From the IMG/VR virus record IMGVR_UViG_3300009108_000751, positions 124,001-188,000 of that record: a stretch of 64,000 bases of DNA. The stretch is one strand, 5' to 3'. The translations under genes and the position numbers were made by a program. Below, piece after piece: positions 8,128 through 62,436 of this stretch. The notes under the pieces were generated by a model. The model was not told the origin of the DNA and searched no databases. It saw only the letters and a program-made list of their open reading frames with translations. Every line of letters starts with the position of its first letter. Position 1 is the stretch's first letter.

Positions 8128-11100
8128 ATGGCCGAACGTACTTTTAAAAGCCCAGGCGTAAGAGCTTTTGAGATCGATAGGTCTGGGCCTACCCCAACCG
8201 GTCCAACGGGCGTTCCAGCAGGCGTAATAGGCACTGCTAAAGAAGGCCCAGCTTTCGTACCGATCACAGTTGCCGACTTCTCCGAATTTGAATCTAAGTT
8301 TGGATTTGTAGGCGGCGATGAGTTCGGACCTATCGCTGCACAAGAATGGCTCAGAAATGCTGGGTCCCTTTCTTATGTGCGAGTACTTGGAGCCGGCAAC
8401 GCGAAGAAAAGGTCTTCAAGCGATGGAACGGTTACGAACGCAGGATTTATCGTAGGCCAGAGATTACCTTTGGATTCTGGGCTTTTAGGAGACAATCCAG
8501 AAGCAAACACCGGCGGAGAAGGAGAAGGAAGAACTTACTTCCTCGGATGCTACATGTCGCAATCCGCAGGATCAACAATCTTCTCCGATGCCGGAATAGG
8601 ATCTGCTCAAAATCTTGGTACCACAGTCGCAGCTTCAGTCCTTCGTGGTGTGCTAATGGCAGCATCAGGTGTCAACCTAAGGCTTTCATGCTCAAATGGT
8701 ACGATGGGCCAGGGAAACACACCAACATCAACAATGACATCATCAATGTCAGGCCAGGGCAACCCATCCGCTGGTTTCTTAACGGGTACAATTAACTTTT
8801 CTAACGGGTCCCCTAAGTTTACCATGCTTTTGCCTGGCCACAAAGGAAAAGATTATCCTCGAGTTCTTACAGCATCTTTAAATCCTGATGACAAAGATTA
8901 CTTTGCAAACATCTTCAATAAAGATCCCCAACAAGTTCAGAAGCACGGCTACGTTCTTTACTCGCATTATGATGTATATCCAGAATATGCCGTCGTGACA
9001 GGTTCGGGAATCTTGGCAACAGGATCAAGCGTTGTGAACGGCGCAGTGTCAGGCTTATACTCAGGAAGCTCTGATGCTGTTTTCCTCCTTACAGGAACTC
9101 AAGGGAGAAACAACGGATCTGCCGCGGCGCCAAACTTCGAAGGATTCCGTGAGAGATTCCAGGCCGCTAAGACGCCATTCATTATCTCACAAGAATTTGG
9201 TGGAACCGCCAAGGATCTCTTCCGAGTGCATCTCTTAAGCGATGGTGTCATGAAGGGCAAATCTTCAGACTCAGTGGGTGCGAACACTAAATACAAGGTT
9301 TCTATTGAGAACGTAGGTAAATCTTCAGATGAACTTAACAAGTTCGGTACGTTCGATCTTGTCTTAAGAGACTTTTACGACAACGATGAGAATACATTCG
9401 TTTATGAGGCCTTCCGCGGCCTTAACCTTGATCCTGCATCGACCAATTACATCGGACGTCGAATTGGCGATACCGACATGTTCTACGATTTTGATCAGGC
9501 ACAGGGATCCCAAAAGCTTGTGATTGACGGAAAGTATGCTAACGTTTCTTCGCGCATAAGAGTTGAAATAGCATCTGATGTTGACAACGGTGAAATCGAT
9601 CCTGAATCTCTGCCCCTAGGGTTTAGAGGTCTAGATCACCTTGTAACCTCTGGATCAAATGTTCTTAGCGCACCTCCAAACGCAAACTTCAGCCTACAGA
9701 GAGACCCAAGCATGACGCTCAAATCAGTTGTGCAACCTCCTGTACCGCTTAGAGAGAACATCGCGATGGGTCTCGCGCCTAAGAAGGTGCCTAATAAGTC
9801 GCTTTACTGGGGCGTCCAATTCACGAAGAAAACCCTCTTAAATGAGCCCAACAAGAGCAGCGTTATTGATCCAAGCATAGTCAGCTTTACGAAATTCTTC
9901 ACTGATCACGCCGTATCTGACTTCAATGTATTGACAGGTTCTAATGCAGGTCAGGCTGATGAAAGCGGCGCAATTCTAGATTGTGATAGGTTTAATAACA
10001 ACAAGTTTACTTTAGAAAACCTGCAGGTCGGTACGGGATCTGATGGTCTTGCATTAACCACGGACGCAGCTCTTGTTAACAGCTGGTCATACGCACGCGA
10101 TGGAAACATCACTACGAATGCTGATGCCAAGACCCGAAGGTTTGAGGTAAACGATACAACAAGCCCGGCGGTTCGAAGGCTCTCTAAGTTTACGATGCCA
10201 TTCCAGGGTGGATTTGATGGATTTAACATCTTTAATAAAAACACCGCCTTGATGAACAACAACGCCGTTAAAGGTGAGATGGATGATTCTAACAGAGGTG
10301 GAATCAACGGCCCGACAGTTGCAGCCTTTAAGAAGGCTCTGGAAGTCATGGGTGAGAAGGCTGATGTTGAGATACAGCTCTTGGCTGTTCCTGGCATTAG
10401 AGAGGCTACCGTCACAAATGATGCTATAACGACTGTAGAGGACAGATTTGATGCACTCTACATCATGGATATCGGCGAGCGTGATAACGTAAACGCAGTG
10501 GTTACTTCCTCTGTGCAAAATGTCAATGTTTCAAATACCGTAGCATCATTCAACGACAGAGCCTTGGATTCATCCTTTGCTGCAGCATATTTCCCAGATG
10601 TTAATATGAACATCCAGGTGAAGACACTGAATCAATCAACGAAGACTGTAGTAGCAAATTCTGCAACAGTTCGGGTTCCGCCGTCAGTTGCAGTTTTAGG
10701 TGCTTTCTCGTTCAACGATGCAGTGGCGTTCCCGTGGTTCGCTCCTGCTGGATTTGCCCGAGGATCTATGAACGCTCTATCTACTGCAGTAAGCCTAAAT
10801 CAAACCAATATGGACGATTTGTACGATAAGGATATCAACCCTATCGTTTCGTTCCCTAATAGTTCTGGCCCGGTAGTTTACGGACAGAAAACTCTGCAAT
10901 CTGCAGCGTCTGCTCTTGACAGAGTCAACGTAAGAAGGCTCTTGATCGACGTAAGGCGCTCAGTTAAGCAAGTTGCACAGCAACTTATCTTCGAGCCTAA
11001 TAGAGAATCAACCCTTCAAAGATTCACTGCTTTGGTAACTCCAATCTTGAAGAGAGTTCAGGAAAACCAAGGTGTTGATCGATTTAGAGTTGTTATTGAT

Positions 11101-11232
11101 TCTAGCACAACTACGCAGGCAGACATTGAAAACAATACAGTTCGAGGGAAGATCTTCTTGCAGCCTACACGAACAGCAGAATTCATCTCGCTTGATTTCG
11201 TGGTAACAAATTCAGGAGTTGATGGACTTTAA
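8128..11232 (+). CDS. Tail sheath protein 2
   Basis: Same sheath motifs (SPGV, PWFAPAG, GQKTLQ, DRVNVRRLL, PTRTAEFI). Confidence 0.95.
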   Translation: MAERTFKSPGVRAFEIDRSGPTPTGPTGVPAGVIGTAKEGPAFVPITVADFSEFESKFGFVGGDEFGPIAAQEWLRNAGSLSYVRVLGAGNAKKRSSSDGTVTNAGFIVGQRLPLDSGLLGDNPEANTGGEGEGRTYFLGCYMSQSAGSTIFSDAGIGSAQNLGTTVAASVLRGVLMAASGVNLRLSCSNGTMGQGNTPTSTMTSSMSGQGNPSAGFLTGTINFSNGSPKFTMLLPGHKGKDYPRVLTASLNPDDKDYFANIFNKDPQQVQKHGYVLYSHYDVYPEYAVVTGSGILATGSSVVNGAVSGLYSGSSDAVFLLTGTQGRNNGSAAAPNFEGFRERFQAAKTPFIISQEFGGTAKDLFRVHLLSDGVMKGKSSDSVGANTKYKVSIENVGKSSDELNKFGTFDLVLRDFYDNDENTFVYEAFRGLNLDPASTNYIGRRIGDTDMFYDFDQAQGSQKLVIDGKYANVSSRIRVEIASDVDNGEIDPESLPLGFRGLDHLVTSGSNVLSAPPNANFSLQRDPSMTLKSVVQPPVPLRENIAMGLAPKKVPNKSLYWGVQFTKKTLLNEPNKSSVIDPSIVSFTKFFTDHAVSDFNVLTGSNAGQADESGAILDCDRFNNNKFTLENLQVGTGSDGLALTTDAALVNSWSYARDGNITTNADAKTRRFEVNDTTSPAVRRLSKFTMPFQGGFDGFNIFNKNTALMNNNAVKGEMDDSNRGGINGPTVAAFKKALEVMGEKADVEIQLLAVPGIREATVTNDAITTVEDRFDALYIMDIGERDNVNAVVTSSVQNVNVSNTVASFNDRALDSSFAAAYFPDVNMNIQVKTLNQSTKTVVANSATVRVPPSVAVLGAFSFNDAVAFPWFAPAGFARGSMNALSTAVSLNQTNMDDLYDKDINPIVSFPNSSGPVVYGQKTLQSAASALDRVNVRRLLIDVRRSVKQVAQQLIFEPNRESTLQRFTALVTPILKRVQENQGVDRFRVVIDSSTTTQADIENNTVRGKIFLQPTRTAEFISLDFVVTNSGVDGL

Positions 11233-22020: not shown

Positions 22021-23211
22021 GTGAAAGTTTGCATCAACCAGAGTATCCTAGGATCCGAACAGCACCTAGTAACTGATTTTAAGTCAGGTGCATCTTGGGT
22101 TAATGAGCCACCCGAAGATGCACTTACGGTGGGATTCAGTGACAGCGAAGAGCTTCAAGTAATATCACGCCTTTCAGGAATCTCAATACCCCGCCACCCC
22201 GACCCTAAGTTTGCAGGCCCTTTTAAGACATTTGGAATTAAAAATATACTCTGGTCGCAAGCTTTGCCTAGGAGTGTGTACAAGAAGTACTTTCAGAATA
22301 TCCAGGATGCTATCAGATTGAACGCGGACTCTGATCAATACGATTACTTTAAAGAGAGGGTTTCAAGGCAACAGAAGCTAATCTCGTCATTGCAGCCTGC
22401 CCACATCGATGAAAAGATCTTTGCTCGAAGGTACGGAGATCCTGCTACTGTTAATAAGTCGGTCTTGACTTCCTTCATGCCTATGAAGGGTGTGACTAAG
22501 AAAGTAGGCTACAATCTTACCGGCACCAACACAGGACGACTCACGATATCAGAAGGCCCCCAGATTCTTACGCTTAAGGCGGAGATGAGGGATATCTTGA
22601 CCTCTCGCTATGAAGGGGGAAAGATCATGCAGTTCGATTACGTAAGCCTGGAGCCTCGCGTTGCACTCATCCTCTCCGGCCAGGATCCTATCAAAGATAT
22701 CTACACTGACCTCTGCGACAAAGTTCTGGACAGCCAGCACGGTCGACAAACTGCAAAGTTGCTGACCATTGCCACGCTGTATGGCATGGGTGTTCGCCGG
22801 GTCAAAGAGTTGATCGGGGTGAGCAAGCACACAGCGCTGGATGTTCTCAAGAATCTGGAGATCTTCTTCGGGGTGGGTGAGGTAAAAGCTCACTTGGAGG
22901 AAGAAGCAAAGTCTGGTTTTATCAAGAATCACTTTGGTAGAAACATCCGAGTTCGCAATAATGCGTCACACGTGCTCTACAACAACTATATACAATCCTC
23001 AGCGATGGATGCAGCACTCGAAGGCTTTTATCAGATTGTGCAAGGTGTAGAGAAGGAAGGCCACAAGTGTGTTCCGCTCTTTCTTTTGCATGATGCGATT
23101 ATTTTTGACTGCCACCCTGAGTGCTTTGACAAGCTTGAGGATATAATGGCACCAGGGCAACAAATACCTGCTTTTAAATCGCGGCTCTACATGGGCGCGG
23201 AGGAACTATAA
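22021..23211 (+). CDS. Minimal family-A DNA polymerase-like protein (no exonuclease domain)
   Basis: 'TGRL', motif A 'DYVSLEPR', motif B 'RQTAK....TLYGMG', 'NYIQS', motif C 'LHDA'. Confidence 0.8.
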   Translation: MKVCINQSILGSEQHLVTDFKSGASWVNEPPEDALTVGFSDSEELQVISRLSGISIPRHPDPKFAGPFKTFGIKNILWSQALPRSVYKKYFQNIQDAIRLNADSDQYDYFKERVSRQQKLISSLQPAHIDEKIFARRYGDPATVNKSVLTSFMPMKGVTKKVGYNLTGTNTGRLTISEGPQILTLKAEMRDILTSRYEGGKIMQFDYVSLEPRVALILSGQDPIKDIYTDLCDKVLDSQHGRQTAKLLTIATLYGMGVRRVKELIGVSKHTALDVLKNLEIFFGVGEVKAHLEEEAKSGFIKNHFGRNIRVRNNASHVLYNNYIQSSAMDAALEGFYQIVQGVEKEGHKCVPLFLLHDAIIFDCHPECFDKLEDIMAPGQQIPAFKSRLYMGAEEL

Positions 23212-25374: not shown

Positions 25375-26562
25375 ATGGCAAAGAAAGCCGCAGGAAGAAA
25401 GTCAAAAGGTTCTGACGACTTCACAGCGGATCTCATCAAGTCACTGAATAAAGATCACGGAAGCAGAATTGCTTACAATCTCAGTGTTGATGAGTCGCCA
25501 ACTCACGTGAAGGCTTGGGTGTCGACAGGCATCCGACAGCTGGATTACATTGTTGCTAATCGTAAGGGAGGCGGACTTCCTTGTGGCAGGATCGTAGAAA
25601 TCTTCGGCCCTCCTTCGATCGGTAAATCACATATCGCCCTACAAATCGCCCGCAATACGCAGGCGATGGGCGGTGTTGTGGTTTATATCGACACAGAAAA
25701 CGGCACCTCAGTGGAAAACCTGGGGCTGCTAGGTATCGATGTTTCCAAGCGTTTCGTCTTCATTGAAACTGCTTGCACTGAAGAAGTATTTGCTGTTGCT
25801 GAGTCCACAATCGCCAAGGCAAGGGGCTTAAATAAAAAAGTTCCTATCACCATTGTGTGGGATTCAGTCGCTGCATCTTCTCCCAAAGCGGAGCTTGTAG
25901 GTGACTATGATAAGGACTCCATAGGTCTGCAAGCTCGCGCCATCTCGAAGGGTATGCGCAAGATCACACAGGTGATTGGAAACACGAACACGCTCTTTAT
26001 CGCTTTGAACCAGACGAGAACGAAGATCGGTGTAATGTATGGAGATCCTACAACTACACCGGGTGGTATGGCACTTCCTTTTCACTCGTCTGTACGAATT
26101 AAGCTCGGTGCCGGCTCCCCTATCAAAAACAAAGACGGCGATGTTGTCGGTATTAACGTGTCAGCAAAATCTATCAAGAACAAGGTAGCGCCACCGTTCA
26201 GGACTTGCCAGTTTGAGATCCACTTCGGCGTGGGTGTCAAAGAGCATGAGCAAGTCACCGATTTACTGCGATCTTCTGAAGATGTAACTGTAGATGGAAA
26301 GACATACTCAGTTGAAGGTTCAGGTGCCTGGAAGACGCTGGCGGTCTCTGATGAAAAGACCGGAGAAGTCTTAGTAGAGAAGAAGTTCACCAAGAGCGGC
26401 ATGGAAGATCTACTTAAGAGCCCTGAATATAGCCCACATATTGAGTTGATGCTGGAACACATCTTGGTAAAGAAGTTTCAGGGCAATCCTGACTTTGATA
26501 CCGACTCTTACGAGGAAGTTCGAGCAGTTGCAATGGATTTGGCGGAGAATGATCTAAGTTGA
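25375..26562 (+). CDS. recA: RecA/UvsX recombinase
   Basis: 'GLPCGRIVEIFGPPSIGKS', 'YIDTE', 'DSVA', 'NQ.R.KIG.MYG.P.TTPGG.AL.F', 'KNKVAPPFR'. Confidence 0.95.
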   Translation: MAKKAAGRKSKGSDDFTADLIKSLNKDHGSRIAYNLSVDESPTHVKAWVSTGIRQLDYIVANRKGGGLPCGRIVEIFGPPSIGKSHIALQIARNTQAMGGVVVYIDTENGTSVENLGLLGIDVSKRFVFIETACTEEVFAVAESTIAKARGLNKKVPITIVWDSVAASSPKAELVGDYDKDSIGLQARAISKGMRKITQVIGNTNTLFIALNQTRTKIGVMYGDPTTTPGGMALPFHSSVRIKLGAGSPIKNKDGDVVGINVSAKSIKNKVAPPFRTCQFEIHFGVGVKEHEQVTDLLRSSEDVTVDGKTYSVEGSGAWKTLAVSDEKTGEVLVEKKFTKSGMEDLLKSPEYSPHIELMLEHILVKKFQGNPDFDTDSYEEVRAVAMDLAENDLS

Positions 26563-27023
26563 GCCTATACATCAAAGTAAAAAAGACACATCCGGACGCA
26601 GTAATCCCGCGCCAAAAAGTTGGTGATGTGGGGTGGGACCTTACCGCAGTCGAAGATGGAACCATTCAGCCTGGAAAAGTTGCAGTAGCACCCACAGGCT
26701 TGATGTTAGCTGAGAATCCTTTTGCTAACGATATTCACAACCAGATCTTGCTTAAGATCGAGGGTCGAAGCGGCCTAGCTAGCAAGCACTGTGTTTTCCC
26801 AGTAGGAGGCATAATCGACCCCAGCTACCGCGGAGAGATGGGTGTGATGCTCTACAATGGTGGAGATACTCCTTACGAGTTCAAGAAGGGTGACAGAGTT
26901 GCTCAGATTGTCGTTTATGAGGTCCATGCAAAAACTATGAGCAATAAAACATGCTTCATGGAAGCAGACACTGTACGCACATCTGAGCGAGGTAGTAAAG
27001 GTTTTGGCTCCTCTGGAAGATAG
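26559..27023 (+). CDS. dut: Trimeric dUTPase
   Basis: 'GWDL', 'GRSGLA', 'GIIDPSYRGE', 'GDRVAQ', 'RG.KGFGSSG'. Confidence 0.93.
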   Translation: MSLYIKVKKTHPDAVIPRQKVGDVGWDLTAVEDGTIQPGKVAVAPTGLMLAENPFANDIHNQILLKIEGRSGLASKHCVFPVGGIIDPSYRGEMGVMLYNGGDTPYEFKKGDRVAQIVVYEVHAKTMSNKTCFMEADTVRTSERGSKGFGSSGR

Positions 27024-37822: not shown

Positions 37823-38779
37823 ATGAAAACGCTACCACAGTTGTTCCAGATCCAGGACCAGTTCTCAGAACTATTCCAAAAGAAGGATGACCTTTCCTTG
37901 GAGGAGAGGGAGCGGCTAACACAGGAGTTCTCTCTAGCACTCCACAGTGAGGTGTCAGCCCTGATCAGTGAGATCAACTTTAAGAACCATCATCAGGATC
38001 GTAAGCAGGTGGTGGAGAACAGCATCCTTTTCGAGGGCGTTGATGTCTTCCGATATCTCTTAGCTATCTTAAATCTCTGGGGCTTCAGTGCAGAGGATTT
38101 CTCGCAGGCTTTCGACGACAAGGAGAACTACCTCCAGGTCAAGTATGTCAAGAACGCGCAGAAGTGGCAAGGCCAACCGGTCATCCTCGTGGATGCCGAC
38201 GATGTGATTGTGGAGTTCCGGAAGGGCTACAGTGAGTATCTTAATGCTATGGAAGGCATCGATGTTGACGTCAACTCCAAAGAATATTATTTCACCAACG
38301 GCATTCCAAAGGACCGCTACAATCCTGAGCAACTATTCCAGGATTTCATCGATCAGCGACGCCTCAGAGATTTAGAGCCTATCACGCCCACAATTCAAGC
38401 AATCAACGACTTGTACGACCAGGGCTATTGGATCCAGATTCTTACAGCTAGACCTGACTGGAACAAAACATGCCAGTATGACACTTATACTTGGCTTGAA
38501 AATAGCGGCCTAAAATTCCACAAAATTGACTTTTCGCCTGAGAAGATGATTTGGGCTGCAAATAGTGAGTATTACGATTCTGAGTCGATTGTGTGCGCTA
38601 TTGATGATAGTTCCAAGCACACTATGGAATATGCTAAGCATGGGATCAAAGTGGCATCGCCAGTCACGCCTTATAACGAGGAGTTGCGAGGGGTAGAGAA
38701 CGTCATTATGTTCGAGACAAAGCAAGAACTTGCTGATATCATTAAACAGTTCTCACTCCGGCGCATATTTAGCGTATGA
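37823..38779 (+). CDS. Fusion of an all-alpha NTP-PPase (MazG-like) and a HAD 5'(3')-deoxyribonucleotidase
   Basis: N-terminal 'SEVSAL....NFK.H', 'FEGVDVFRY'; C-terminal 'LVDADDVI', 'ILTARP', 'T..WL', 'AIDDS'. Confidence 0.75.
   Translation: MKTLPQLFQIQDQFSELFQKKDDLSLEERERLTQEFSLALHSEVSALISEINFKNHHQDRKQVVENSILFEGVDVFRYLLAILNLWGFSAEDFSQAFDDKENYLQVKYVKNAQKWQGQPVILVDADDVIVEFRKGYSEYLNAMEGIDVDVNSKEYYFTNGIPKDRYNPEQLFQDFIDQRRLRDLEPITPTIQAINDLYDQGYWIQILTARPDWNKTCQYDTYTWLENSGLKFHKIDFSPEKMIWAANSEYYDSESIVCAIDDSSKHTMEYAKHGIKVASPVTPYNEELRGVENVIMFETKQELADIIKQFSLRRIFSV
38764..38773 (+). promoter_or_regulatory. Putative late promoter (catatttagc)
   Basis: ATATTTA immediately before the start of 38776. Confidence 0.55.
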
Positions 38780-41186: not shown

Positions 41187-41624
41187 ATGAAGGTTTATAT
41201 CGCATCCCCGTTCTTTAACCCCAAGCAAGTTGAGCAAGTTGAGTTTCTTAAAGAAGCCCTCACTGCAGCAGGTCATGAATACTTTAGCCCAAAGGATTTC
41301 TTTGTGCTCAAGCCTAATGCTACGCAAGAGGATCGCACACGTATCTTTGATGTGAACTGCGAGAAGATCCAGTGGGCTGACTTTGTCCTGTGCAACACGG
41401 AAGCCAAGGATCTTGGCACTATTTGGGAGGCAGGTTATGCTTACGGCATCGAAAAGCCGGTCGTCTTCTTTGCTGAGGGCTTGCCCGATGGTAAGTTTAA
41501 CGTGATGCTTAGTGAAGCCGGCAAGTCAGTCAACACCACGCGTGAGCAGATGCAAGACTACCTTAGTCGTGTTTCCGACGCAGGGGAGCTCATCTTCGAA
41601 CAATATTCAGGATTTACTCAGTAG
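41187..41624 (+). CDS. Nucleoside 2-deoxyribosyltransferase / N-glycosidase family (NDT, MilB, DNPH1-like)
   Basis: 'VYIASPFF', 'FSP', 'DLGTIWEAGYA' (catalytic Glu), 'KPVV', 'NVML'. Confidence 0.88.
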   Translation: MKVYIASPFFNPKQVEQVEFLKEALTAAGHEYFSPKDFFVLKPNATQEDRTRIFDVNCEKIQWADFVLCNTEAKDLGTIWEAGYAYGIEKPVVFFAEGLPDGKFNVMLSEAGKSVNTTREQMQDYLSRVSDAGELIFEQYSGFTQ

Positions 41625-46649: not shown

Positions 46650-47783
46650 ATGGGCGGTGCAGCTGGACATATGGCACATCCTTTCGATCTTCCCGCAGTT
46701 CGAAATGGAAAAGACCTGATCAAGTTCTTTGACGACGCGTCAGAATACCTTGCCAATAATGAGTCGAGCGTAAAGATCGACGGCGTCAATGTAAGCTTTA
46801 AGCTCGTCGACGGGCCGAACGGCAAAGAGTTCGCGATGGATCGTGGAAGCTTAAGCCCGCTGGATATCGGTGGCATCACTCGAGCGAAACTTGACCAACG
46901 CTTTCCAGAGGGTCACGGTATGATCGCGGCAGGAAACGAGATGCTCGATCTGCTTAACACTGCACTCCCGGACATTCAATCAGAGCTTGAAGAGCTCGGA
47001 ATGTACGACGATCCGACAATGTTCCTAAACACGGAGTATGTTTCAGGCAAGACCAATGTGACAGATTACGACCAGAAGTTTCTGGCCATTCACGGTCTCA
47101 ACCAGTTCTACGAGAAGATATCACGCATCAAGAGTAAAGCGCGTCGACCAGGCGCTCCACGACCGGAAGGGGTAAAAGCTCCTAGTGCGGAAGTAGCATA
47201 TGACAAATCCGTCATGAAGCGTCTTATTGACAAGCTTGGAGCTGCAGCCAAGAAGCAAGGCTTCGAGGTTTACGGTGATGTCCCGGCTGCTCTCAAAGGA
47301 GATGCTCAGACTGCTGATTTCTCCGGCACTCTCTCGTCGCCGTTTGAGGTGGTGAGGTCCGAGGGCGAAGCGGAAACTAAACCCTTGTCCCAATGGCTTC
47401 AGGCAGCAAACCACCCGGGAGTTGAAAAGATAACTTTAGGTAGCGGCAAGAAGGTGAATGCTCTCAGCAAAGAGGTCTATATGTCCATTATCGATGGAGT
47501 GCCCGTTGATGAGCTTGTCCCAGACTCAGGCCAACAGCAGACTGCCATTGACGCAGCAGTCATCTACCATGCTACTCGAATGCTAGGAAACGATATCCTT
47601 GATGTGCTTACCTCACCAATGGGCGATGTTCGCGCTCACGAAGGTGTGGTTCTCCGAGACGAGCGCTTTGGTTCACGCCCAGTAAAGATCACGGGTGATT
47701 TTATCGTAGGTGGCTTGGAATCTGCGTTCCAGAAGAACGAAAGCCTTCTCAGGAACTACGTTAAAGCTATTCTTAAATCTTAA
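46650..47783 (+). CDS. Ligase-like covalent nucleotidyltransferase-fold protein (DUF6267-like) with C-terminal tag
   Basis: 'GHMAHPFD', motif I 'VKIDG.N', 'NTEYV', 'HEGVVLR', 'PVKITG'; ends 'ESLLRNYVKAIL'. Confidence 0.6.
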   Translation: MGGAAGHMAHPFDLPAVRNGKDLIKFFDDASEYLANNESSVKIDGVNVSFKLVDGPNGKEFAMDRGSLSPLDIGGITRAKLDQRFPEGHGMIAAGNEMLDLLNTALPDIQSELEELGMYDDPTMFLNTEYVSGKTNVTDYDQKFLAIHGLNQFYEKISRIKSKARRPGAPRPEGVKAPSAEVAYDKSVMKRLIDKLGAAAKKQGFEVYGDVPAALKGDAQTADFSGTLSSPFEVVRSEGEAETKPLSQWLQAANHPGVEKITLGSGKKVNALSKEVYMSIIDGVPVDELVPDSGQQQTAIDAAVIYHATRMLGNDILDVLTSPMGDVRAHEGVVLRDERFGSRPVKITGDFIVGGLESAFQKNESLLRNYVKAILKS

Positions 47784-48988: not shown

Positions 48989-51900
48989 GTGTCATTTGAC
49001 GATTTCAAGAAACCTAATCGATTCGTAGGCATGCACGGCCACGATGGTTATTCCACTTACGATGGCCTAGGATACCCAGCAGATCACCTGGACTTTGTCT
49101 TGGAGAACGGCATGGATGCCCTCTCTATTACCAACCACGGTAACTGCAACTCCCTCCCTTTCCTCTGGAAGCACGGCGAGAAACTACGCAAGCAAGGTCG
49201 AAATGTTAGAACCATCTCAGGATGTGAGTTCTATTTTGTTCCATCGCTTAAGGAGTGGGAGAAGCAGTATCAAAACCATCGAGATCGAGTAAAGGCGGAA
49301 CGGGATGCTAAAAAGCAAGAAGCCCTATCTAAGATCGATGTCAATAAAGATGCCGAGGATGATGAGGCTCAGGGGGGCCACGTTATTGAGGATGAGGAAG
49401 CCAGCAAGACTTACGACCCCGACGCCTTGGATTGGAAGCGCCGGTATCACTTAGTTGTCACAGCGCGGAACTTGACCGGCCTGCAAAACCTCTTCAGGTT
49501 AATCAAGCGCTCGTACAAGGAAGGGTTTTATCGGTTTCCACGCATTGACTTTGAAATGTTGAAGGAGCACGGGGAAGGGCTCCAGGTGTCGTCTGCCTGT
49601 CTGGCAGGCATCGCCACTGGAACCGTCTTTAAGGGGCAGGCTCACAAGAAAGATTTTGAGGAGATCATGCGGGATCTCGGTAATCTCACAGATCGCTTTC
49701 ATGATGCGCTAAGTCCGGATCGTTTCTTCTGGGAGATCCAGTTCAACTCCTTGGACGCACAACACACCACAAATCACTACCTGCTAGAGATGGCCAAACG
49801 CCACAACCTTCCTCTCATCGCCACCGCAGACAGTCACTATCCACGACCGGACCTGTGGGAAGCCCGGGAGCTCTACAAGAAGCTCGGCTGGATGCGTGAT
49901 AAGCCCACCCCTCTCCCCACCTTCGACGAGCTCAAGTGTGAGCTTTATCCCAAGAACGCGGAACAGATGTGGGAGGAGTACGGAAGGCATTACACTCAGC
50001 ACGACTTCTACAATGGCACCGAAGACATGGTCCGGCAAGCAATCGAGCGTACACATGACCTGACCTGGAACGAGTTCGAGGACGTCTGGATCGACAGCAA
50101 AGCCAAGCTGCCTAACTACGCCAATCCCCAGCGTTCACACGCGTGCTATCCCGAGCCGCCTGAGGACACCCCGTTCCAGCAGCTAGCTAAGCTGGTCAAG
50201 GCGGCGATGATCCGCGAGGGCCTAGGTGACAAGCCCGAGTACGTCGCGCGTGTCAAGGAGGAGATGGACGACATCAAGTTCCTGGGCTTCGAGAACTACT
50301 TCCTGACCATGTATGACGTGTTCCATCTCGCAGAGAAGAAGACGCTGTTCGGGCCGGCCCGTGGTTCGGGTGGTGGCTCGCTGGTCAACTACCTGCTGGG
50401 CATCACGCAGATCGACCCCCTCCCGTTTGGCCTGCTGTGGTCGCGCTTCCTGGGCCGCCACCGCACGTCCTGGCCTGACATCGACTCTGACGCGGGAGAC
50501 CGCGACGCGCTGATCGATGCAGCTCGAGTCCTCTTTGGAGAGGATGCGGTCATTCCCGTGTCCAACTTCAACACGCTGAAACTCAAGTCCATCGTTAAGG
50601 ATGTGGCCAAGTTCTACCAGATCGACTTCGCCGAAGTGAACCGGATCACTGGTCCCCTCCAGGGTGAGGTGGAACCCTTCGCCCGAGATGCCAACACCGA
50701 GAAGTCCGTCTTTGTGCTCAAGCACGACGACTGTATGAAGTACTCCGATAACTACCGGACCTTTATGGAGAAGTATCCGCACGTGGAGAAGCACGTGAGC
50801 ACGTTGTTTATGGAACAACGAGCCATCGGCCGACATGCTGGGGGCGTCCTCATCGCTGATGAGAATGAGTTAGCCGAGACCATGCCCCTGATCGGTGTGC
50901 GTGGTGAGCTCCAGACCCCCTGGACCGAGGGTATGAACTTCCGGAACCTGGAAGACAACGGTTTCATCAAGTTCGACTTCCTCGGCCTAACCCTAATGAA
51001 GGATGTGGAGAACTGCATCAAGCGCGTCCTGCGGACGCCTGACAATCCTCAGCCTAGCTTTGCGCAGATTAAAGAGTATTTTGACGAGCATCTTAACTGC
51101 CGATATGTCAAGCAGGATGACCCTAAGGTGTGGGAGCACTCCTATCACCATCAGAATTTCGCCCCGGGCCTCTTTCAGTTTACGGCTCAGGGAGCTCGCA
51201 ACTTCTGTCAGCAGGCTAAACCCGATAACATTGAGGAACTAGCGGCCATTACTGCTATCTATCGCCCGGGCCCACTCAAGGCTAATGTCCACATCAAGTA
51301 CGTGGAAGCCAAGAACGACCGGGACAACATTGTCTACGACCACCCCGTGATCGAGCGCGTCCTCGGCCCCACCTGCGGTTTCATCACCTTTCAGGAGCAG
51401 TTCATGACCCTGGCAGTCGAGCTCGCAGGGTTTACTCCCGGTGAGTCTGACAAGATGCGTAAGACGCTGGTGAAGAAGTCCTTAGACACCATCGGTAAGA
51501 AGGGTTCCGAACGTGACCAGCTGCGTAAGCAATTCGTGGAAGGTGCTCAACGCCTCCATGACCTAGATCCCAAGATCACTCACGCGCTTTTCGATAAGAT
51601 CGAGTTCTTCTCCCTTTATGGTTTCAATAAGTCGCACGCCGTGGCTTACGCCATCGATAGCTACTACGCCGCCTGGCTCTACACCTACCATCCCAAGGAG
51701 TGGATCGCTACTGTGCTCCAGTCAGAGAACAACTCCCCTAACGGTCTGGCTAAGACCATCCGGGAGGTCAAGGTCCTGGGTTACAAGTTTGCACCATCGG
51801 ATATCAACTACTCCGGTGAGGAGTGGGATTATAATCCTGAGCGAAAAGCCTTTGTACCTCCCCTGTCTTCTATTAAAGGTGTTGGTGGTAAAGCGATGGA

Positions 51901-52879
51901 GGAGATCATCGAGCATCGTCCTTTCCGCAATCTACGCGAGCTCTTCTTTAATGAGGAGGGTAAGTGGCGTCACTCCAAGGTAAATAAGACCTGCTTCGGT
52001 GCGCTCTGTCAGATTGAGGCTTTCACCTCGCTGCAGGAGTTCCAAGACGGTGACCTTGACAACCATCGCCAGCTCTACCACTTGATCGTTGATAACTACG
52101 AGCAGATCCGAAAGTCGGATGAAGGTAAGAAGAAGTGGTTGGATAAGCTAGAAGCCATCGGTGACAAGAACCGCGAGGAGGTCGATAAGATCATCTCCGT
52201 CTACACCAAGACCAAGATGCCTGAGATGGAGGAAGCCGCTCGATCTCTCGTCCTTGATGCTAATGTGATGGACTGGACTTACATCGATCACTTAGTAGAT
52301 TCCCTCAAGACTATCGAGCACCCTAAACCTCGACGACAGCTCCAGATCGATCGCTGCTTCGAACGGATTGCAAAGAACGGCGATCGTCGTGAAAAGATCC
52401 TTGAGCGCATCGATGCTTTCTTCGATCTAGACGAGGCAATGGGTTCTGTTGCGCACATTGAAGACTGGTCGCGTGATGAGAAGATTCGTCTCTACCAGGA
52501 GATCACGTCTGCTATCAATAATGCGTTGGTCTTTCCTGCCGAGGTGATGAAGCGAATCACCAAGACTGATATGCCCTCTGTCTGTGAGATCCCTGGCGGG
52601 GAGAAGGCTGTTGCTTGGGGTTGCGCCGCCGAGATCCAGAAGAAGACCACCAAGAAGGGTAAAGAGTTCTATCGCCTTCGAATGATCGATGACCAGAACA
52701 GATCTTGCTGGCTTCGAGTATGGGGTAAGTTCTTCGAGTGGGGTGAGGAGCGCGGACAAAAGCTCTACTACGAACCACCCGATTTCTCCTACTGGTTGAT
52801 GGAGGTGGATGTAGATCCTAACTGGGGCGCTTCCACCGCAGCCTTTAAGATGCGCAGGATCCCCCTAGCCGATGATTAA
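48989..52879 (+). CDS. dnaE: DNA polymerase III alpha subunit (family C)
   Basis: PHP 'H.H..YS..DG', 'DSHY'; 'GPARGSGGGSLV.YLLGIT', 'PDIDSD', 'HAGG', 'KFDFLGL', 'YRPGP', 'YGFNKSHA'. Confidence 0.96.
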   Translation: MSFDDFKKPNRFVGMHGHDGYSTYDGLGYPADHLDFVLENGMDALSITNHGNCNSLPFLWKHGEKLRKQGRNVRTISGCEFYFVPSLKEWEKQYQNHRDRVKAERDAKKQEALSKIDVNKDAEDDEAQGGHVIEDEEASKTYDPDALDWKRRYHLVVTARNLTGLQNLFRLIKRSYKEGFYRFPRIDFEMLKEHGEGLQVSSACLAGIATGTVFKGQAHKKDFEEIMRDLGNLTDRFHDALSPDRFFWEIQFNSLDAQHTTNHYLLEMAKRHNLPLIATADSHYPRPDLWEARELYKKLGWMRDKPTPLPTFDELKCELYPKNAEQMWEEYGRHYTQHDFYNGTEDMVRQAIERTHDLTWNEFEDVWIDSKAKLPNYANPQRSHACYPEPPEDTPFQQLAKLVKAAMIREGLGDKPEYVARVKEEMDDIKFLGFENYFLTMYDVFHLAEKKTLFGPARGSGGGSLVNYLLGITQIDPLPFGLLWSRFLGRHRTSWPDIDSDAGDRDALIDAARVLFGEDAVIPVSNFNTLKLKSIVKDVAKFYQIDFAEVNRITGPLQGEVEPFARDANTEKSVFVLKHDDCMKYSDNYRTFMEKYPHVEKHVSTLFMEQRAIGRHAGGVLIADENELAETMPLIGVRGELQTPWTEGMNFRNLEDNGFIKFDFLGLTLMKDVENCIKRVLRTPDNPQPSFAQIKEYFDEHLNCRYVKQDDPKVWEHSYHHQNFAPGLFQFTAQGARNFCQQAKPDNIEELAAITAIYRPGPLKANVHIKYVEAKNDRDNIVYDHPVIERVLGPTCGFITFQEQFMTLAVELAGFTPGESDKMRKTLVKKSLDTIGKKGSERDQLRKQFVEGAQRLHDLDPKITHALFDKIEFFSLYGFNKSHAVAYAIDSYYAAWLYTYHPKEWIATVLQSENNSPNGLAKTIREVKVLGYKFAPSDINYSGEEWDYNPERKAFVPPLSSIKGVGGKAMEEIIEHRPFRNLRELFFNEEGKWRHSKVNKTCFGALCQIEAFTSLQEFQDGDLDNHRQLYHLIVDNYEQIRKSDEGKKKWLDKLEAIGDKNREEVDKIISVYTKTKMPEMEEAARSLVLDANVMDWTYIDHLVDSLKTIEHPKPRRQLQIDRCFERIAKNGDRREKILERIDAFFDLDEAMGSVAHIEDWSRDEKIRLYQEITSAINNALVFPAEVMKRITKTDMPSVCEIPGGEKAVAWGCAAEIQKKTTKKGKEFYRLRMIDDQNRSCWLRVWGKFFEWGEERGQKLYYEPPDFSYWLMEVDVDPNWGASTAAFKMRRIPLADD

Positions 52880-53075
52880 TCCGGGACAACTTGTCAGAAT
52901 CACAAAGACAGCTGTGCAGGACAGTCGCCATCTAAATAAGTTGGGTGTCTTGCTGAAGGATAATGGTGTGGACGATTGTGGCATTCCAGAAGTATATATT
53001 TTAGTCGATGGTGATAGAATATGGGTATACCCAGACGGATATGAGGTGATTGATGATCAAGTTTCCGATCTCTAA
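52872..53075 (+). CDS. Small SH3/KOW-like hypothetical protein
   Basis: 'PGQLVRI...LGVL...ILVDG..W'; resembles 48765. Confidence 0.55.
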   Translation: MINPGQLVRITKTAVQDSRHLNKLGVLLKDNGVDDCGIPEVYILVDGDRIWVYPDGYEVIDDQVSDL

Positions 53076-53961
53076 GGTCGTTCTAGAGGGTTGCGACCTA
53101 AGTGGCAAGACCTCGCTCTATAACTCCATTCATAAGCGATCTGGATTCCGATGGAACATTGATGATAGGTCATCTTTGTCAATGTGCGTCTACGCTAATC
53201 AATATGATCGGGATGATTACTACCTTAGAAAGAACCTCACGATGGAGCTATCTAACCTGAACAATCACTTTGTTCTTCTCCATCCTGACCTGGACGTGAT
53301 TCATAACAGATATCTCGACCGAGGAGATGAGTTCCAGGATGTCGACTCTCTGATCGACCTGCACACAAGGTTCAGCAAGGAGTTTGAAAAGATCTGCATG
53401 TTACCTAACGTTCATGCCTTCACTTCAGGGACGCTGAAGGACCAGGCCGATCGATTGATGAGTAACTTCTCTGACTGGGAAGCAAGGACACCTGAACAGA
53501 TCGGTCGTTTGGCCTATGAGTTCGCCAAGTTCAGCCCGAACCGTGAGTGCACAACGATGCAGTTCCACTTCTACGATGACGGAACCTTTGAGGAGGTGAA
53601 TGACAATATTGAATTTACTCCTGGCGAGGAAGTGTACTACGCTCGAATCAGAGGCAAACTGATCGGAAAGATAGAAGATGAGCTTCGCGGCCGAAACCCT
53701 TATAAGCGCAAGGAGACAGACCAGTCACGAAGGTTTGTGTTCTCCGGAGAGGAATGCATCTCCTTCATCCAGGTTCTCGTTCGGGATGGTTTGATGGATG
53801 TCCACGCTGTATTTCGAAGTTCTGATACAGAGCGCAAGACAGCCACCGACATTCAGCTAATCCATTACCTAGGCAGAGAGGCCTTTAGGTTGCTCAGATT
53901 GAACCCAGATGAATATAAAGTTCGCTTCCGGTTTAACATAAACAGTGCTCACGTACTTTAA
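53053..53961 (+). CDS. Fusion of a dNMP kinase (P-loop) and a thymidylate-synthase/dCMP-hydroxymethylase fold
   Basis: N-terminal 'LEGCDLSGKTSL', 'DR...S..VY'; C-terminal 'SRR', 'CISFIQ', 'FRSSD.......D', 'NINSAHV'. Confidence 0.8.
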   Translation: MIKFPISKVVLEGCDLSGKTSLYNSIHKRSGFRWNIDDRSSLSMCVYANQYDRDDYYLRKNLTMELSNLNNHFVLLHPDLDVIHNRYLDRGDEFQDVDSLIDLHTRFSKEFEKICMLPNVHAFTSGTLKDQADRLMSNFSDWEARTPEQIGRLAYEFAKFSPNRECTTMQFHFYDDGTFEEVNDNIEFTPGEEVYYARIRGKLIGKIEDELRGRNPYKRKETDQSRRFVFSGEECISFIQVLVRDGLMDVHAVFRSSDTERKTATDIQLIHYLGREAFRLLRLNPDEYKVRFRFNINSAHVL

Positions 53962-54037: not shown

Positions 54038-54382
54038 ATGCGCCTAGCACTAGTAACAATGTTCGCAATCGGTCTGATGGGTTGTCCCGACGACAAGGCA
54101 GCCACCACGGCTGCTGCAACCACCACAACCGGTACCGCCACAATGGCAACTGGTAATGAAGGTACGACTAATACGGAGACCACTGAGGGAACCGAAACGA
54201 ATACCGAAAATACCAACAACACTGGTAGCACCACCAATACAGAAGGTGCTGCTACTGAGACCAATGCAGCCGCGGCCAACGAAGCTGCTGCAGCAGCACC
54301 AACCACGGCAACGGAGGAAACTCCTGCCGCAACGAACACCAACACCGATGAGACGAAAACTACTAACAATAGTAACGACTAA
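54038..54382 (+). CDS. Thr/Asn/Ala/Glu-rich lipoprotein
   Basis: Lipobox 'LMG-C', low-complexity mature part, own promoter and terminator. Confidence 0.75.
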   Translation: MRLALVTMFAIGLMGCPDDKAATTAAATTTTGTATMATGNEGTTNTETTEGTETNTENTNNTGSTTNTEGAATETNAAAANEAAAAAPTTATEETPAATNTNTDETKTTNNSND

Positions 54383-54404: not shown

Positions 54405-54435
54405 GAAGGGGGCCTCTGTGCCCCCTTCTTTATTT
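54405..54435 (+). terminator. Intrinsic terminator
   Basis: gaagggggc-ctctgt-gcccccttc followed by tttattt. Confidence 0.8.
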
Positions 54436-54445
54436 GGAGACAAAA

Positions 54446-55375
54446 ATGACAAGACATGCGCTGGTGACGGGAGCCGCTGGGTTTATAGGATCTAATCTTT
54501 GCCGCAAGCTTTTGCAAGAAGGCTGGAAGGTTACAGGAGTAGACGATCTGAGCAGCGGCCATCTTGAGCTTGTCCAGGGATTAAAAGGGCTGACATTGGT
54601 CGTAAATGACTTCGCTTCTGAACCCATTGTAGAAGCTGTGGAGTCAGGAGACTTTGACGTAGTATTTCACGTCGCCGCAGTGCCACGCGTAAGCTATTCA
54701 GTCGAAAATCCATCAGATACAACTCTTAATAACGTGGCTAAGACAGTAAAGTTAATGGAGTCTTGCAGGGGAAAGATCGATAGGTTTGTATTCTCTTCGT
54801 CTTCGTCAGTCTACGGGGGCGCCGAAGTAATGCCCACACCTATAGATCAGCCTCGAGATCCAAAGTCTCCTTATGCTTGGCAGAAGTCTTCTGTAGAAGA
54901 TCTGCTTAGAATGTTTGGTAATCTATACGATTTCGACTCCGTGTGCCTGCGCTACTTTAATGTGTTTGGACCTAATCAATACGGTGACTCACCCTACTCC
55001 ACAGCCATCTCCGCATGGTGTCACGCTGTAAAAGAAGGATTACCTCTTCGAAAAGACGGCACAGGTGAACAGAGTCGTGATATGTGCTATGTTGACAATG
55101 TTGTAGATGTTAATATACGAGCAGCCAACCACGAAGGTGCACTTAAAGGTGAGGCTTTCAACGTCGCATGCGGTGATCGAACTAGCAACAATGAGATCTT
55201 GGCTGCTTTCGAGTCCCGATTTGGAGATATCGACGTAAAGCAGGCTCCATTTCGACCCGGAGATGTCATGCACACTCAGGCAGATATTTCCGAGACAGAA
55301 AGAGTATTTGGTTACAAGCCCCTTGTAAGATTTTGGGACGGTCTTGAAAAGACGTTTGACTGGTGGGGAATATAG
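54446..55375 (+). CDS. NDP-sugar epimerase/dehydratase (WbpP/GalE-like SDR)
   Basis: 'TGAAGFIG', 'VDDLSSG', 'SSSSVYG', 'PYAWQK', 'LRYFNVFGP', 'RPGDV'. Confidence 0.92.
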   Translation: MTRHALVTGAAGFIGSNLCRKLLQEGWKVTGVDDLSSGHLELVQGLKGLTLVVNDFASEPIVEAVESGDFDVVFHVAAVPRVSYSVENPSDTTLNNVAKTVKLMESCRGKIDRFVFSSSSSVYGGAEVMPTPIDQPRDPKSPYAWQKSSVEDLLRMFGNLYDFDSVCLRYFNVFGPNQYGDSPYSTAISAWCHAVKEGLPLRKDGTGEQSRDMCYVDNVVDVNIRAANHEGALKGEAFNVACGDRTSNNEILAAFESRFGDIDVKQAPFRPGDVMHTQADISETERVFGYKPLVRFWDGLEKTFDWWGI

Positions 55376-61749: not shown

Positions 61750-62436
61750 ATGAAGAAGAAAGATGTGGCAAAAAATATCCGTGAATCTTTGGGTATGAGA
61801 AATACTGAGAGCCTCGATGAGGCGCTAGTAGTTCAAGCAAAGCCGTTTGCTATTCCAACAGAAGCCCTCTCAGGCGAAAACATTAGAAATCATTACAGCC
61901 TGTACGAGACTTACGCAAAAGATTTTAACAAAATAAGCGCAGAACTCGATGGTGCAGACAGATCTAATGCTTCATCAAATCACTCAGCGTTTAGAAGCTT
62001 GAAAATAGATGAAGTCTACAATTTAAATGCCACGTATTTGCACGAGCTTTACTTTGCTAACATCGGTGATTTGCAGAGCGAAATTACAATGGATACGCTT
62101 TCTTTCATGCGCCTTGAAAGAGACTTCGGTTCTTTTGACGCATGGCAAATGGATTTTCTTGCTTGCGCAAAGTCATCTCGCTGCGGCTGGGTTATCACTG
62201 GATTTAATGTTTTTACTCACACTTACATGAACTATGTTGTTGATCTTCATTCTCTTAACATGCCCGTTGGTGTCATTCCCGTAATTGTTCTGGATGTCTG
62301 GCAGCATGCTTACTACAAGGACTACTTAAAGGATGTATCTGCATATACAGTCAACATGATGAAGGAATTAAACTGGAACGTGATTGAGCAGAGGTTTGGG
62401 CGAACTGATAAGATCGCCCAGGTTATGAGAGGTTAA
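61750..62436 (+). CDS. Fe/Mn superoxide dismutase-like protein
   Basis: 'NHYSLY..Y', 'N...LHELYF', 'DFGSF..W', 'GW', 'LDVWQHAYY.DY'. Confidence 0.85.
   Translation: MKKKDVAKNIRESLGMRNTESLDEALVVQAKPFAIPTEALSGENIRNHYSLYETYAKDFNKISAELDGADRSNASSNHSAFRSLKIDEVYNLNATYLHELYFANIGDLQSEITMDTLSFMRLERDFGSFDAWQMDFLACAKSSRCGWVITGFNVFTHTYMNYVVDLHSLNMPVGVIPVIVLDVWQHAYYKDYLKDVSAYTVNMMKELNWNVIEQRFGRTDKIAQVMRG

Follow-up and report, generated by a model that had tools for sequence, protein, structure and literature searches.

A P-loop kinase fused to a minimal thymidylate synthase fold in uncultured marine jumbo phages: a candidate enzyme for cytosine modification

The window analyzed in this study is a stretch of 64,000 nucleotides corresponding to positions 124,001 to 188,000 of the IMG/VR virus record IMGVR_UViG_3300009108_000751. 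Located at 53053..53961 on its plus strand is a gene encoding a two-domain protein of 302 amino acids (counted from the ATG at 53053), in which a P-loop kinase domain is followed by a minimal domain of the thymidylate synthase (TS) fold. The mechanically called open reading frame (ORF) covers 53050..53961 (+), starts with TTG and contains 303 codons; all residue numbers given here are counted from the TTG at 53050, and the ATG-based number is obtained by subtracting 1. Since a Shine-Dalgarno-like box, GAGGTGA (53042..53048, +; read from the sequence), precedes the ATG at 53053 and the N-termini of homologues read MIKFP, this ATG is the likely start, which supports the span 53053-53961 assigned to the gene in an initial annotation of the nucleotide sequence. 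The kinase domain, a reduced version of the thymidylate-kinase-like type, comprises residues 1-145 (53050..53484, +) and was recognized by weak Pfam matches, phrog_761, YorR and Tmk entries of BFVD. The TS-fold domain comprises residues 146-303 (53485..53958, +) and was recognized by AlphaFold2 modeling, Foldseek searches of the PDB and hhalign. The stop codon, read from the sequence, lies at 53959-53961 (+).

In order to evaluate the fold of the C-terminal domain, predicted structures were compared with known ones. The AlphaFold2 model of the full-length protein, built with a 36-sequence alignment, features two confident domains (predicted local distance difference test, pLDDT, 93.9; predicted template modeling score, pTM, 0.89), for which a fixed packing is predicted. 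Modeled alone, the C-terminal 158 amino acids reached a pLDDT of 97.3, and the secondary-structure elements of this model follow the order helix, strand, long helix, three strands, helix, strand. The top 50 matches of the domain model in a Foldseek search of the PDB all represented TS-family enzymes (probability 1.00, TMq 0.50-0.64), and the same outcome was obtained with the full-length model. The best matches were AfhB 9iqu (E 3.7e-8, TMq 0.63) and then 9iqc (flavin-dependent dCMP 5-hydroxylase of phage HY126; dCMP, deoxycytidine monophosphate), followed further down by ThyA of many species, T4 dCMP hydroxymethylase and MilA. Based on these models, a TS fold can confidently be predicted for the C-terminal 158 amino acids. 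Among predicted viral structures (BFVD, searched with Foldseek), matches were divided between TS/dCMP-hydroxymethylase homologues and thymidylate kinases, and no two-domain analogue was found among them. Regarding sequence families, the protein was not matched by Pfam PF00303 (only 3 of 50 family domains match, with a best E of 0.031) and obtained no match in a scan of NCBIfam; PHROG 160, 'thymidylate synthase', was matched by 13 of 36 family members.

Compared with E. coli ThyA, the domain retains helix A and strand i, a single long helix, the pair of arginines, three strands, helix J and the His207-bearing strand. The W80/W83 segment (approx. 50-60 residues) is replaced by a 12-residue loop (214-225), through which the long helix 194-213 is joined to the SRR motif. 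Moreover, the loop between the arginine pair and the Cys measures 9 residues vs. 20 in E. coli ThyA, and the chain terminates two residues past His301, the entire C-terminal lid being absent. A conserved phosphate-binding basic residue of the R21 type (Lys28 in T4 dCMP hydroxymethylase) was not found in loop 160-169, where the alignment is of low confidence; the conserved residue in this loop is E166, which is common to the T4, AfhB and Xp15 enzymes. For the N-terminal half of the domain, the hhalign result was non-significant and placed the long helix in two conflicting ways, equating it once with helix B and once with the helix that precedes the two arginines. The domain is the smallest TS-type domain found in this analysis. 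Structural-atlas neighbors of a fragment from this family comprise PF00303 proteins of approx. 155 amino acids from Methanobacteriota archaea and bacterial DUF4346 + TS proteins; reduced TS folds may therefore occur beyond this phage family.

The catalytic register was deduced from profile comparisons. A profile of 50 C-terminal domains, searched with hmmsearch against PDB sequences, matched T4 dCMP hydroxymethylase (E 0.0037) and AfhB (E 0.022), with the aligned columns pairing Cys236 with Cys148, Arg256-Ser257 with Arg168-Ser169, Asp267 with Asp179 and SAH with SLH (T4) or SAH (AfhB). The chain of the T4 D179N mutant (6l18) departs from the wild type precisely at the column aligned to Asp267. 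Furthermore, hhalign yielded a probability of 96.6% (E 4.8e-10) against a mixed TS alignment composed of E. coli ThyA, T4 gp42, the Mosigvirus AfhB orthologue and the TS of Xp15 and Pikmin, and 96.3% (E 1.9e-9) against 120 AfhB-family proteins. Considering the former value and the Foldseek probability of 1.00, the match to the TS family is far beyond chance.

Within this register, S226-R227-R228-F229 (53725..53736, +; profile alignments) corresponds to S125/R126/R127 of TS, the phosphate-binding arginine pair supplied by the TS dimer partner, and Cys236 (tgc, 53755..53757, +; profile alignments) to TS Cys146 and T4 Cys148, the catalytic nucleophile. The loop before this Cys is shortened, reading SGEEC here and TDDSC in the family consensus, and an equivalence to L143, the position marked by an acidic residue in T4-type hydroxymethylases, is nominal only. 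Arg245 (53782..53784, +; alignments) is shared with T4 dCMP hydroxymethylase, AfhB and Xp15 ('IRD') and is Ala in E. coli ThyA. R256-S257-S258-D259 (53815..53826, +; hhalign) is equivalent to R166-S167-C168-D169 of TS, in which D169 is the pterin-facing residue. Asp267 (gac, 53848..53850, +; hmmsearch and hhalign) represents the pyrimidine-specificity residue, Asn177 in E. coli and Asp179 in T4, and the spacing of 11 residues from Arg256 to Asp267 equals that from Arg166 to Asn177 in E. coli. S299-A300-H301 (53944..53952, +; hmmsearch and hhalign) corresponds to D205-T206-H207. For the roles of E58 and Y94, the nearly invariant residues E193/E211 and Y196/Y197/Y218 are candidates on grounds of conservation, among them the motif E193-x-x-Y196-Y197 (53626..53640, +).

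These results bear on the initial annotation, which had read the gene as encoding a deoxynucleoside monophosphate (dNMP) kinase joined to a minimal TS fold that carries a cytosine-specifying Asp. Each of the motifs quoted there is present in the sequence at its place, including the Cys codon at 53755-53757 and the Asp codon at 53848-53850. The TS fold, a claim open to refutation by structure comparison, is borne out by the uniformly TS-type top 50 PDB matches, and both profile methods put Asp267 into the Asn177/Asp179 column, where the annotation had placed it by counting. The Gly said to be absent after RSxD is indeed replaced, Lys263 occupying the G173 position, and the description of a short domain ending right after the His motif agrees with the chain end at His301 plus two residues. 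Its view that 'NINSAHV' is nearer to the T4 enzyme than to TS holds as well (T4 'NVGSLHVY' and AfhB 'TMVSAHVF' vs. E. coli 'GGDTHLY'), and its kinase proved to be a P-loop kinase of the thymidylate-kinase family, as deduced from phrog_761, YorR and BFVD. Its functional proposal, a bifunctional dCMP-C5 modifier and kinase that may use a donor other than folate, is supported in part. An Asp at the N177 site selects dCMP (PMC13326640).

For the analysis of conservation, 192 full-length homologues were aligned, and a profile was taken from the 185 (at 25-40% identity) that feature Cys236 as well as the Lys of the P-loop. Cys236, which 185 of these 192 sequences carry, was one of the two criteria by which the profiled set was filtered. 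R227, R256, S257 and D267 occur in each of the 185 homologues. Likewise highly conserved are E193 (184), H301 (183), Y197 and F229 (180 each), R228 and R245 (179 each), E211 and S238 (178 each), Y196 and G214 (175 each), N216 (168) as well as E166 and Y218 (164 each). Position 259, the equivalent of D169, is unusually relaxed (D in 76, N in 63, E in 41 and H in 4 homologues). Since Arg245, E166 and 'SAHV' are common to T4 gp42, AfhB and Xp15 and are not found in ThyA, the domain was placed in the phage dCMP-modifying branch. An interpretation as a decayed ThyA relic was rejected, because the catalytic residues are invariant across the homologues.

For the N-terminal domain, phrog_761, 'thymidylate kinase', was matched by the protein with an E of 4.9e-6 and by 35 of 36 family members. 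In the PDB sequence search, the prophage nucleotide kinase YorR was the sole match of the protein, and the family profile matched YorR with an E of 2.8e-7. Pfam reported AAA_28 and Thymidylate_kin in the N-terminal third, both sub-threshold; PF02223 (E 0.046) stayed under the cut-off for this protein, and many family members carry precomputed PF02223 matches. The P-loop EGCDLSGKTS (53086..53115, +; sequence and alignment) contains E13, G14, D16, G19 and K20, which are invariant or nearly so; the P-loop Asp of thymidylate kinases (TMPKs) contacts the 3'-OH of the acceptor. D39-R40-S41 (53164..53172, +; alignment) is invariant and represents the DR(Y/S) motif of TMPK and deoxynucleoside kinases. 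Moreover, a LID-like motif R91-G92-D93-E94 (53320..53331, +; alignment), with R87 upstream, is invariant. The P-loop, DRS and RGDE motifs fit the thymidylate-kinase pattern.

The gene is a core gene of an uncultured marine jumbo T4-like phage lineage with contigs of up to 284 kb. Two database searches retrieved about 165-200 clusters, nearly all of approx. 300 amino acids and with both domains. Relatives were detected on 125 IMG/VR contigs and on just 2 contigs of metagenome-assembled genomes among 185,579 species genomes; accordingly, the family is essentially viral. When 50,697 phage records were searched with the protein by tblastn, no match was obtained, which implies that the family has no cultured representative. 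Regarding atypical members, the one stand-alone minimal domain that was checked (P0245) turned out to be a split copy of the fusion with its kinase half just upstream (L011, 135-461 and 501-1073; low-coverage contig). In P0265, an LpxB-like N-terminus is joined to the TS-like domain, probably as an assembly chimera, and the distant members P0255 and P0230 reside on short contigs (1-2 kb) that offer no genomic context.

The window is part of a jumbo marine myovirus of the T4 superfamily, and an identical gene is present on an IMG/VR contig of 235,681 bp. Phage structural genes observed comprise those for Gp23, gp19, baseplate proteins and two giant sheath paralogues. The latter are encoded in tandem (4960-8091 and 8128-11232, +), each exceeding 1000 amino acids, and have their nearest relatives in Far-T4-type phages (Microcystis phage Mel-JY01, Rhodothermus RM378, Flavobacterium phage immuto) and in an uncultured phage of 484 kb.

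Synteny was counted over 80 IMG/VR loci of about 20 kb. Upstream of the fusion gene, the window encodes an intact DnaE-type DNA polymerase III alpha of 1296 amino acids (48989..52879, +); a DnaE-type polymerase gene is located upstream on the same strand in all 80 loci. In relatives, the corresponding gene is distributed over 2-3 ORFs, split by intein-like or other inserted ORFs (L008, 2691-7548; L009, 1-5998). A family A polymerase fragment was noticed at 22021-23211 of the window. The conserved downstream neighbor (54434..55375, +) encodes a short-chain dehydrogenase/reductase (SDR) resembling nucleotide-sugar epimerases/dehydratases, with intact GxxGxxG and YxxxK motifs; it follows within 2 kb in 67 of the 72 loci offering enough sequence, at a median gap of 58 nt. 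A small ORF between both genes (54038-54382, +) encodes a product with a lipoprotein signal and lipobox (MRLALVTMFAIGLMGC) ahead of a low-complexity tail rich in Thr, Ala and Asn, and is not found at that position in the relatives L007-L009. Genes for thymidine kinase (TK), a DHH phosphoesterase, dCMP deaminase and a superoxide dismutase (SOD)-like protein come next in 62-66 of the 80 loci. The last of these, of the Fe/Mn type, is encoded at 61750-62436 (+) in the window; in 64 of the 80 loci, its gene trails the fusion gene by approx. 4.6 kb, and in relatives a pterin-4a-carbinolamine dehydratase gene lies a few kb beyond it.

The surrounding nucleotide module encodes a trimeric dUTPase (26559-27023, +), a class II ribonucleotide reductase, a fusion of a MazG/dUTPase_2 part with a part of the haloacid dehalogenase (HAD) type (37823-38779, +), ThyX, a nucleoside deoxyribosyltransferase-like protein, two SDR epimerases, GMP reductase and the above-mentioned TK, DHH phosphoesterase and dCMP deaminase. 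The MazG/HAD fusion, resembling dimeric dUTPase and NT5C 5'-nucleotidase in its respective parts, recurs upstream of ThyX in relatives. Its MazG-like part shows weak pairwise similarity to the T4 dCTPase gp56 (E 0.001). The fusion could represent the dCTP-depleting enzyme of a cytosine-replacement pathway. The deoxyribosyltransferase-family protein (145 amino acids; 41187-41624, +) is conserved beside ThyX in relatives and may act as a dNMP N-hydrolase or base-exchange enzyme in the salvage module.

Homologues of ThyA, gp42 and AfhB were found neither within 10 kb in the 80 loci nor in the window, and the kinase-TS protein would therefore be the module's only TS-fold enzyme. The synthesis of deoxythymidine monophosphate (dTMP) is covered by ThyX. 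A dedicated folate enzyme (dihydrofolate reductase, DHFR, or canonical ThyA) was not found nearby, which is consistent with a non-folate donor, and no homologue of the T4 beta-glucosyltransferase was detected in the 80 loci. The ORF at 46650-47783, selected by its size in the search for a glycosyltransferase, dCTPase, ThyA, gp42 or AfhB, was identified as a DUF6267 ligase-like protein. Palindrome avoidance in the window is unremarkable and hence uninformative on DNA modification.

The fold, the register, the conserved catalytic residues, the viral distribution and the synteny are results of the analysis; for the substrate, the catalysis and the product of the protein, we infer the following. 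Its most likely function is the modification of dCMP at C5 plus phosphorylation, so that a modified cytosine nucleotide would be made by a bifunctional enzyme before DNA replication. The minimal TS-fold domain is probably dimeric, like all TS enzymes. The phosphate of dCMP would be held by Arg227/Arg228 of the partner subunit together with Arg256 and Ser257, and Asp267 would read the N3/N4 edge of cytosine. Cys236 would then attack C6, rendering C5 nucleophilic; C5 would gain a substituent, and the Cys would depart. The fused thymidylate-kinase-like domain would phosphorylate the product to the diphosphate, bypassing host kinases, and host nucleoside-diphosphate kinase and the DnaE-type polymerase of the phage would complete the route into DNA. 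As for the chemistry at C5, our committed guess is a non-folate, AfhB-type oxidation (flavin and O2 yielding 5-hydroxy-dCMP), with folate-dependent hydroxymethylation in second place. A non-folate donor is plausible, because the folate wall and lid are absent, the D169 position is relaxed and the nearest structure is that of a flavin enzyme. A bifunctional role in dCMP modification, whatever the donor, is regarded as fairly probable, and the narrower version with a non-folate donor is put forward tentatively, with confidence somewhat short of even. Taken together, the results suggest that marine phages carrying the fusion use an as yet undescribed route to produce a chemically modified cytosine for incorporation into their DNA.

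Several observations weigh against this proposal. The domain lacks the portions of TS that line the pocket for folate or flavin, which leaves any cofactor binding putative; no cofactor could be assigned, nor could the residues equivalent to E58 and Y94, given the non-significant hhalign result for this half of the domain. The D169N exchange is the signature proposed for 5-hydroxy-dCMP synthases, with Asn in all tested ones (PMC13326640), whereas Asp259 stands at this position here and the residue is mixed across the family. In the kinase domain, K20 and R40 are separated by 20 residues vs. approx. 50 in YorR and the Mosigvirus kinase, and the usual acceptor-binding segment is missing; correspondingly, positions 28-81 of the TMPK profile (strand 2 and the NMP-binding helices; approx. 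30-50 residues) are unmatched. Searches of the 64-kb window and the 80 loci detected no DNA glycosyltransferase, and a T4 gp56-type dCTPase was not seen in the 80 loci, the weak MazG-like/gp56 match being the only trace of it in the window; these absences weaken the case for a full, T4-like replacement of cytosine. Finally, the module contains a full route to dTTP (dCMP deaminase, ThyX, TK), and the kinase could therefore be a plain thymidylate kinase.

This last point leads to a reading in which the kinase serves the phage as its thymidylate kinase or as a general dNMP kinase, and the TS-like domain performs no C5 modification but is a nucleotide-binding module, its role being regulation, channeling from dCMP deaminase or ThyX, or replacement of the missing NMP-binding part. 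The three routes to dTMP in the module (dCMP deaminase, ThyX, TK) agree with it, as do the failure to see any other thymidylate kinase in the window or its neighbors, the kinase domain's lack of an NMP-binding segment of its own and the failure to find a glycosyltransferase or a clear dCTPase. Yet the retention of the Cys, His301, the Tyr/Glu set and Asp267 at 25-40% identity is unexpected for mere binding, Asp267 indicates cytosine and not thymine or uracil, and a phosphate clamped by four side chains at the TS dimer interface offers poor geometry for handover to a kinase, so that this reading appears quite improbable. Alternatively, the protein may combine a dNMP kinase with a dCMP hydroxymethylase (or dCMP methylase) that depends on folate, as a compact equivalent of T4 gp42 plus gp1. 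Methylene-tetrahydrofolate would be bound via the retained 169-177 loop and helix, with the kinase domain or the dimer partner replacing the pocket wall. T4 dCMP hydroxymethylase is the top PDB match by sequence profile, Asp259 stands at the D169 position as in folate enzymes, and acidic residues precede the Cys as in hydroxymethylases (rule quoted in PMC13326640). Moreover, ThyX in the same module implies that methylene-tetrahydrofolate is used during infection, and a hydroxymethylase yields tetrahydrofolate, making DHFR unneeded and matching its absence. However, the W80/W83 segment and the entire folate-closing C-terminal lid are absent, the best Foldseek match is a flavin enzyme, and the D169 equivalent, invariant in folate-dependent TS enzymes, varies between D, N, E and H across orthologues of the same synteny; folate dependence is consequently considered unlikely.

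A further possibility is that the minimal TS core performs its chemistry with neither folate nor flavin and yields an undescribed cytosine derivative, e.g., through a Cys adduct of dCMP that drives deamination or an exchange at C4/C5, or through capture of a new electrophile, possibly ATP-coupled via the kinase. The loss of cofactor-side elements and the variable D169 position would accord with this, as would a set of invariant polar residues for which no role was assigned (E166, E193, Y196, Y197, K207, E211, N216, Y218), the predicted fixed packing of the two domains and the tightly linked downstream SDR. However, the argument is built solely on missing parts, a zinc dCMP deaminase is already present in the module, and such chemistry is without precedent in the TS superfamily, which makes it very unlikely. 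In a broader form, a stripped TS core, possibly with the fused kinase and the linked SDR, would install a C5 or other cytosine modification by neither the folate nor the known flavin route; this, too, is rather improbable. Were it true, a widespread uncultured lineage of marine jumbo phages would carry an undescribed DNA base, and the domain would represent the minimal catalytic unit of the TS superfamily.

To our knowledge, nearly all known pre-replicative modifications of pyrimidines in phage DNA start with an enzyme of the TS superfamily. A version of 158 amino acids in which the nucleotide-side catalytic residues persist and most of the cofactor side is gone is relevant to the superfamily's switch from folate to flavin and to its minimal pocket, the question raised in PMC13326640. 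Phages of this lineage may carry modified cytosine, which would affect the evasion of restriction and CRISPR as well as the behavior of their DNA in sequencing. Current annotation pipelines (Pfam, NCBIfam) overlook the TS-like domain entirely. A description of the kinase-TS fusion was not found in the literature searched.

Comparison with characterized systems places the two halves of the protein in familiar company. E. coli ThyA (264 amino acids) shares the core sheet, helix J and the equivalents of R126/R127, C146, R166/S167, D169 and H207; it differs in that its Asn177 is Asp here, a conserved R21, W80 and W83 and the Gly/Pro motif 'LGxPFN' are lacking, and residues after H207 are absent. 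The protozoan DHFR-TS proteins, which were among the Foldseek matches via their TS part, provide a precedent for a TS fused to the enzyme of an adjacent step, although the TS is full-size there and the partner recycles the cofactor instead of phosphorylating the product. The kinases YorR, RB69 gp45 and DLP3 gp78 and thymidylate kinases share the P-loop EGxDxxGKT, the DR motif and the RGDE LID; unlike them, the domain described here is fused to a TS-fold domain, and the stretch leading from its P-loop helix to its DR motif is shorter by approx. 30-50 residues.

T4 gp42 (1b5d/1b49) matches the domain in Cys148, Arg168/Ser169, Asp171, Asp179 and 'SLHV', the counterparts of Cys236, Arg256/Ser257, Asp259, Asp267 and 'SAHV', and gp42 and gp1 follow the same pathway logic, dCMP being modified and then phosphorylated by a phage kinase. 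However, gp42 is larger (246 amino acids), having a C-terminal extension and a complete folate pocket, gp1 belongs to another kinase family and has a gene of its own, and for the dCTPase and glucosyltransferases of T4 no counterpart was found in the 80 loci. Gp42 and gp1 associate in the dNTP-synthesizing complex of T4, and the fusion would be a covalent version of this pair or of the RB69 pair of gp48 and its kinase.

AfhB is similar in its TS fold, the SRR pair, the Cys, the 'IRD' Arg, the RS motif, the Asp at the N177 site, 'SAHV' and the short C-terminus, and AfhB-type proteins are likewise phage-encoded beside a phrog_761 nucleotide kinase. They comprise 217-238 amino acids, include the Y94 middle segment and score as PF00303, whereas the domain reported here, with 158 amino acids and without this segment, is invisible to Pfam; moreover, the kinase is fused here and encoded separately there, and no arabinose or glycosyltransferase genes are located nearby. 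RB69 gp48, DLP3 gp80 and RL38J1 gp216 are TS homologues that make 5-hydroxy-dCMP with loosely bound flavin (Lee et al., NAR 2026, PMC13326640), and each is encoded near a YorR/TMPK-like 'nucleotide kinase' whose substrate is not named there. In the RB69-type locus of Mosigvirus SHSML-52-1, the synthase (phrog_160, E 1e-46) is two genes away from the kinase (phrog_761, E 2e-45), and these are the same two PHROGs that are matched by members of the fusion family; When the two halves were compared with the Mosigvirus kinase and 5-hydroxy-dCMP synthase by pairwise BLASTP, the result was uninformative, and the relationship is visible to profiles and structure only. The fusion argues that the kinase and the TS-type enzyme act in one pathway; both PHROGs are broad, so that this argument is supportive rather than decisive. 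This fused-gene logic ties the orphan 'nucleotide kinases' of the RB69, DLP3 and RL38J1 clusters to the TS step and suggests that these kinases may act on modified dCMP.

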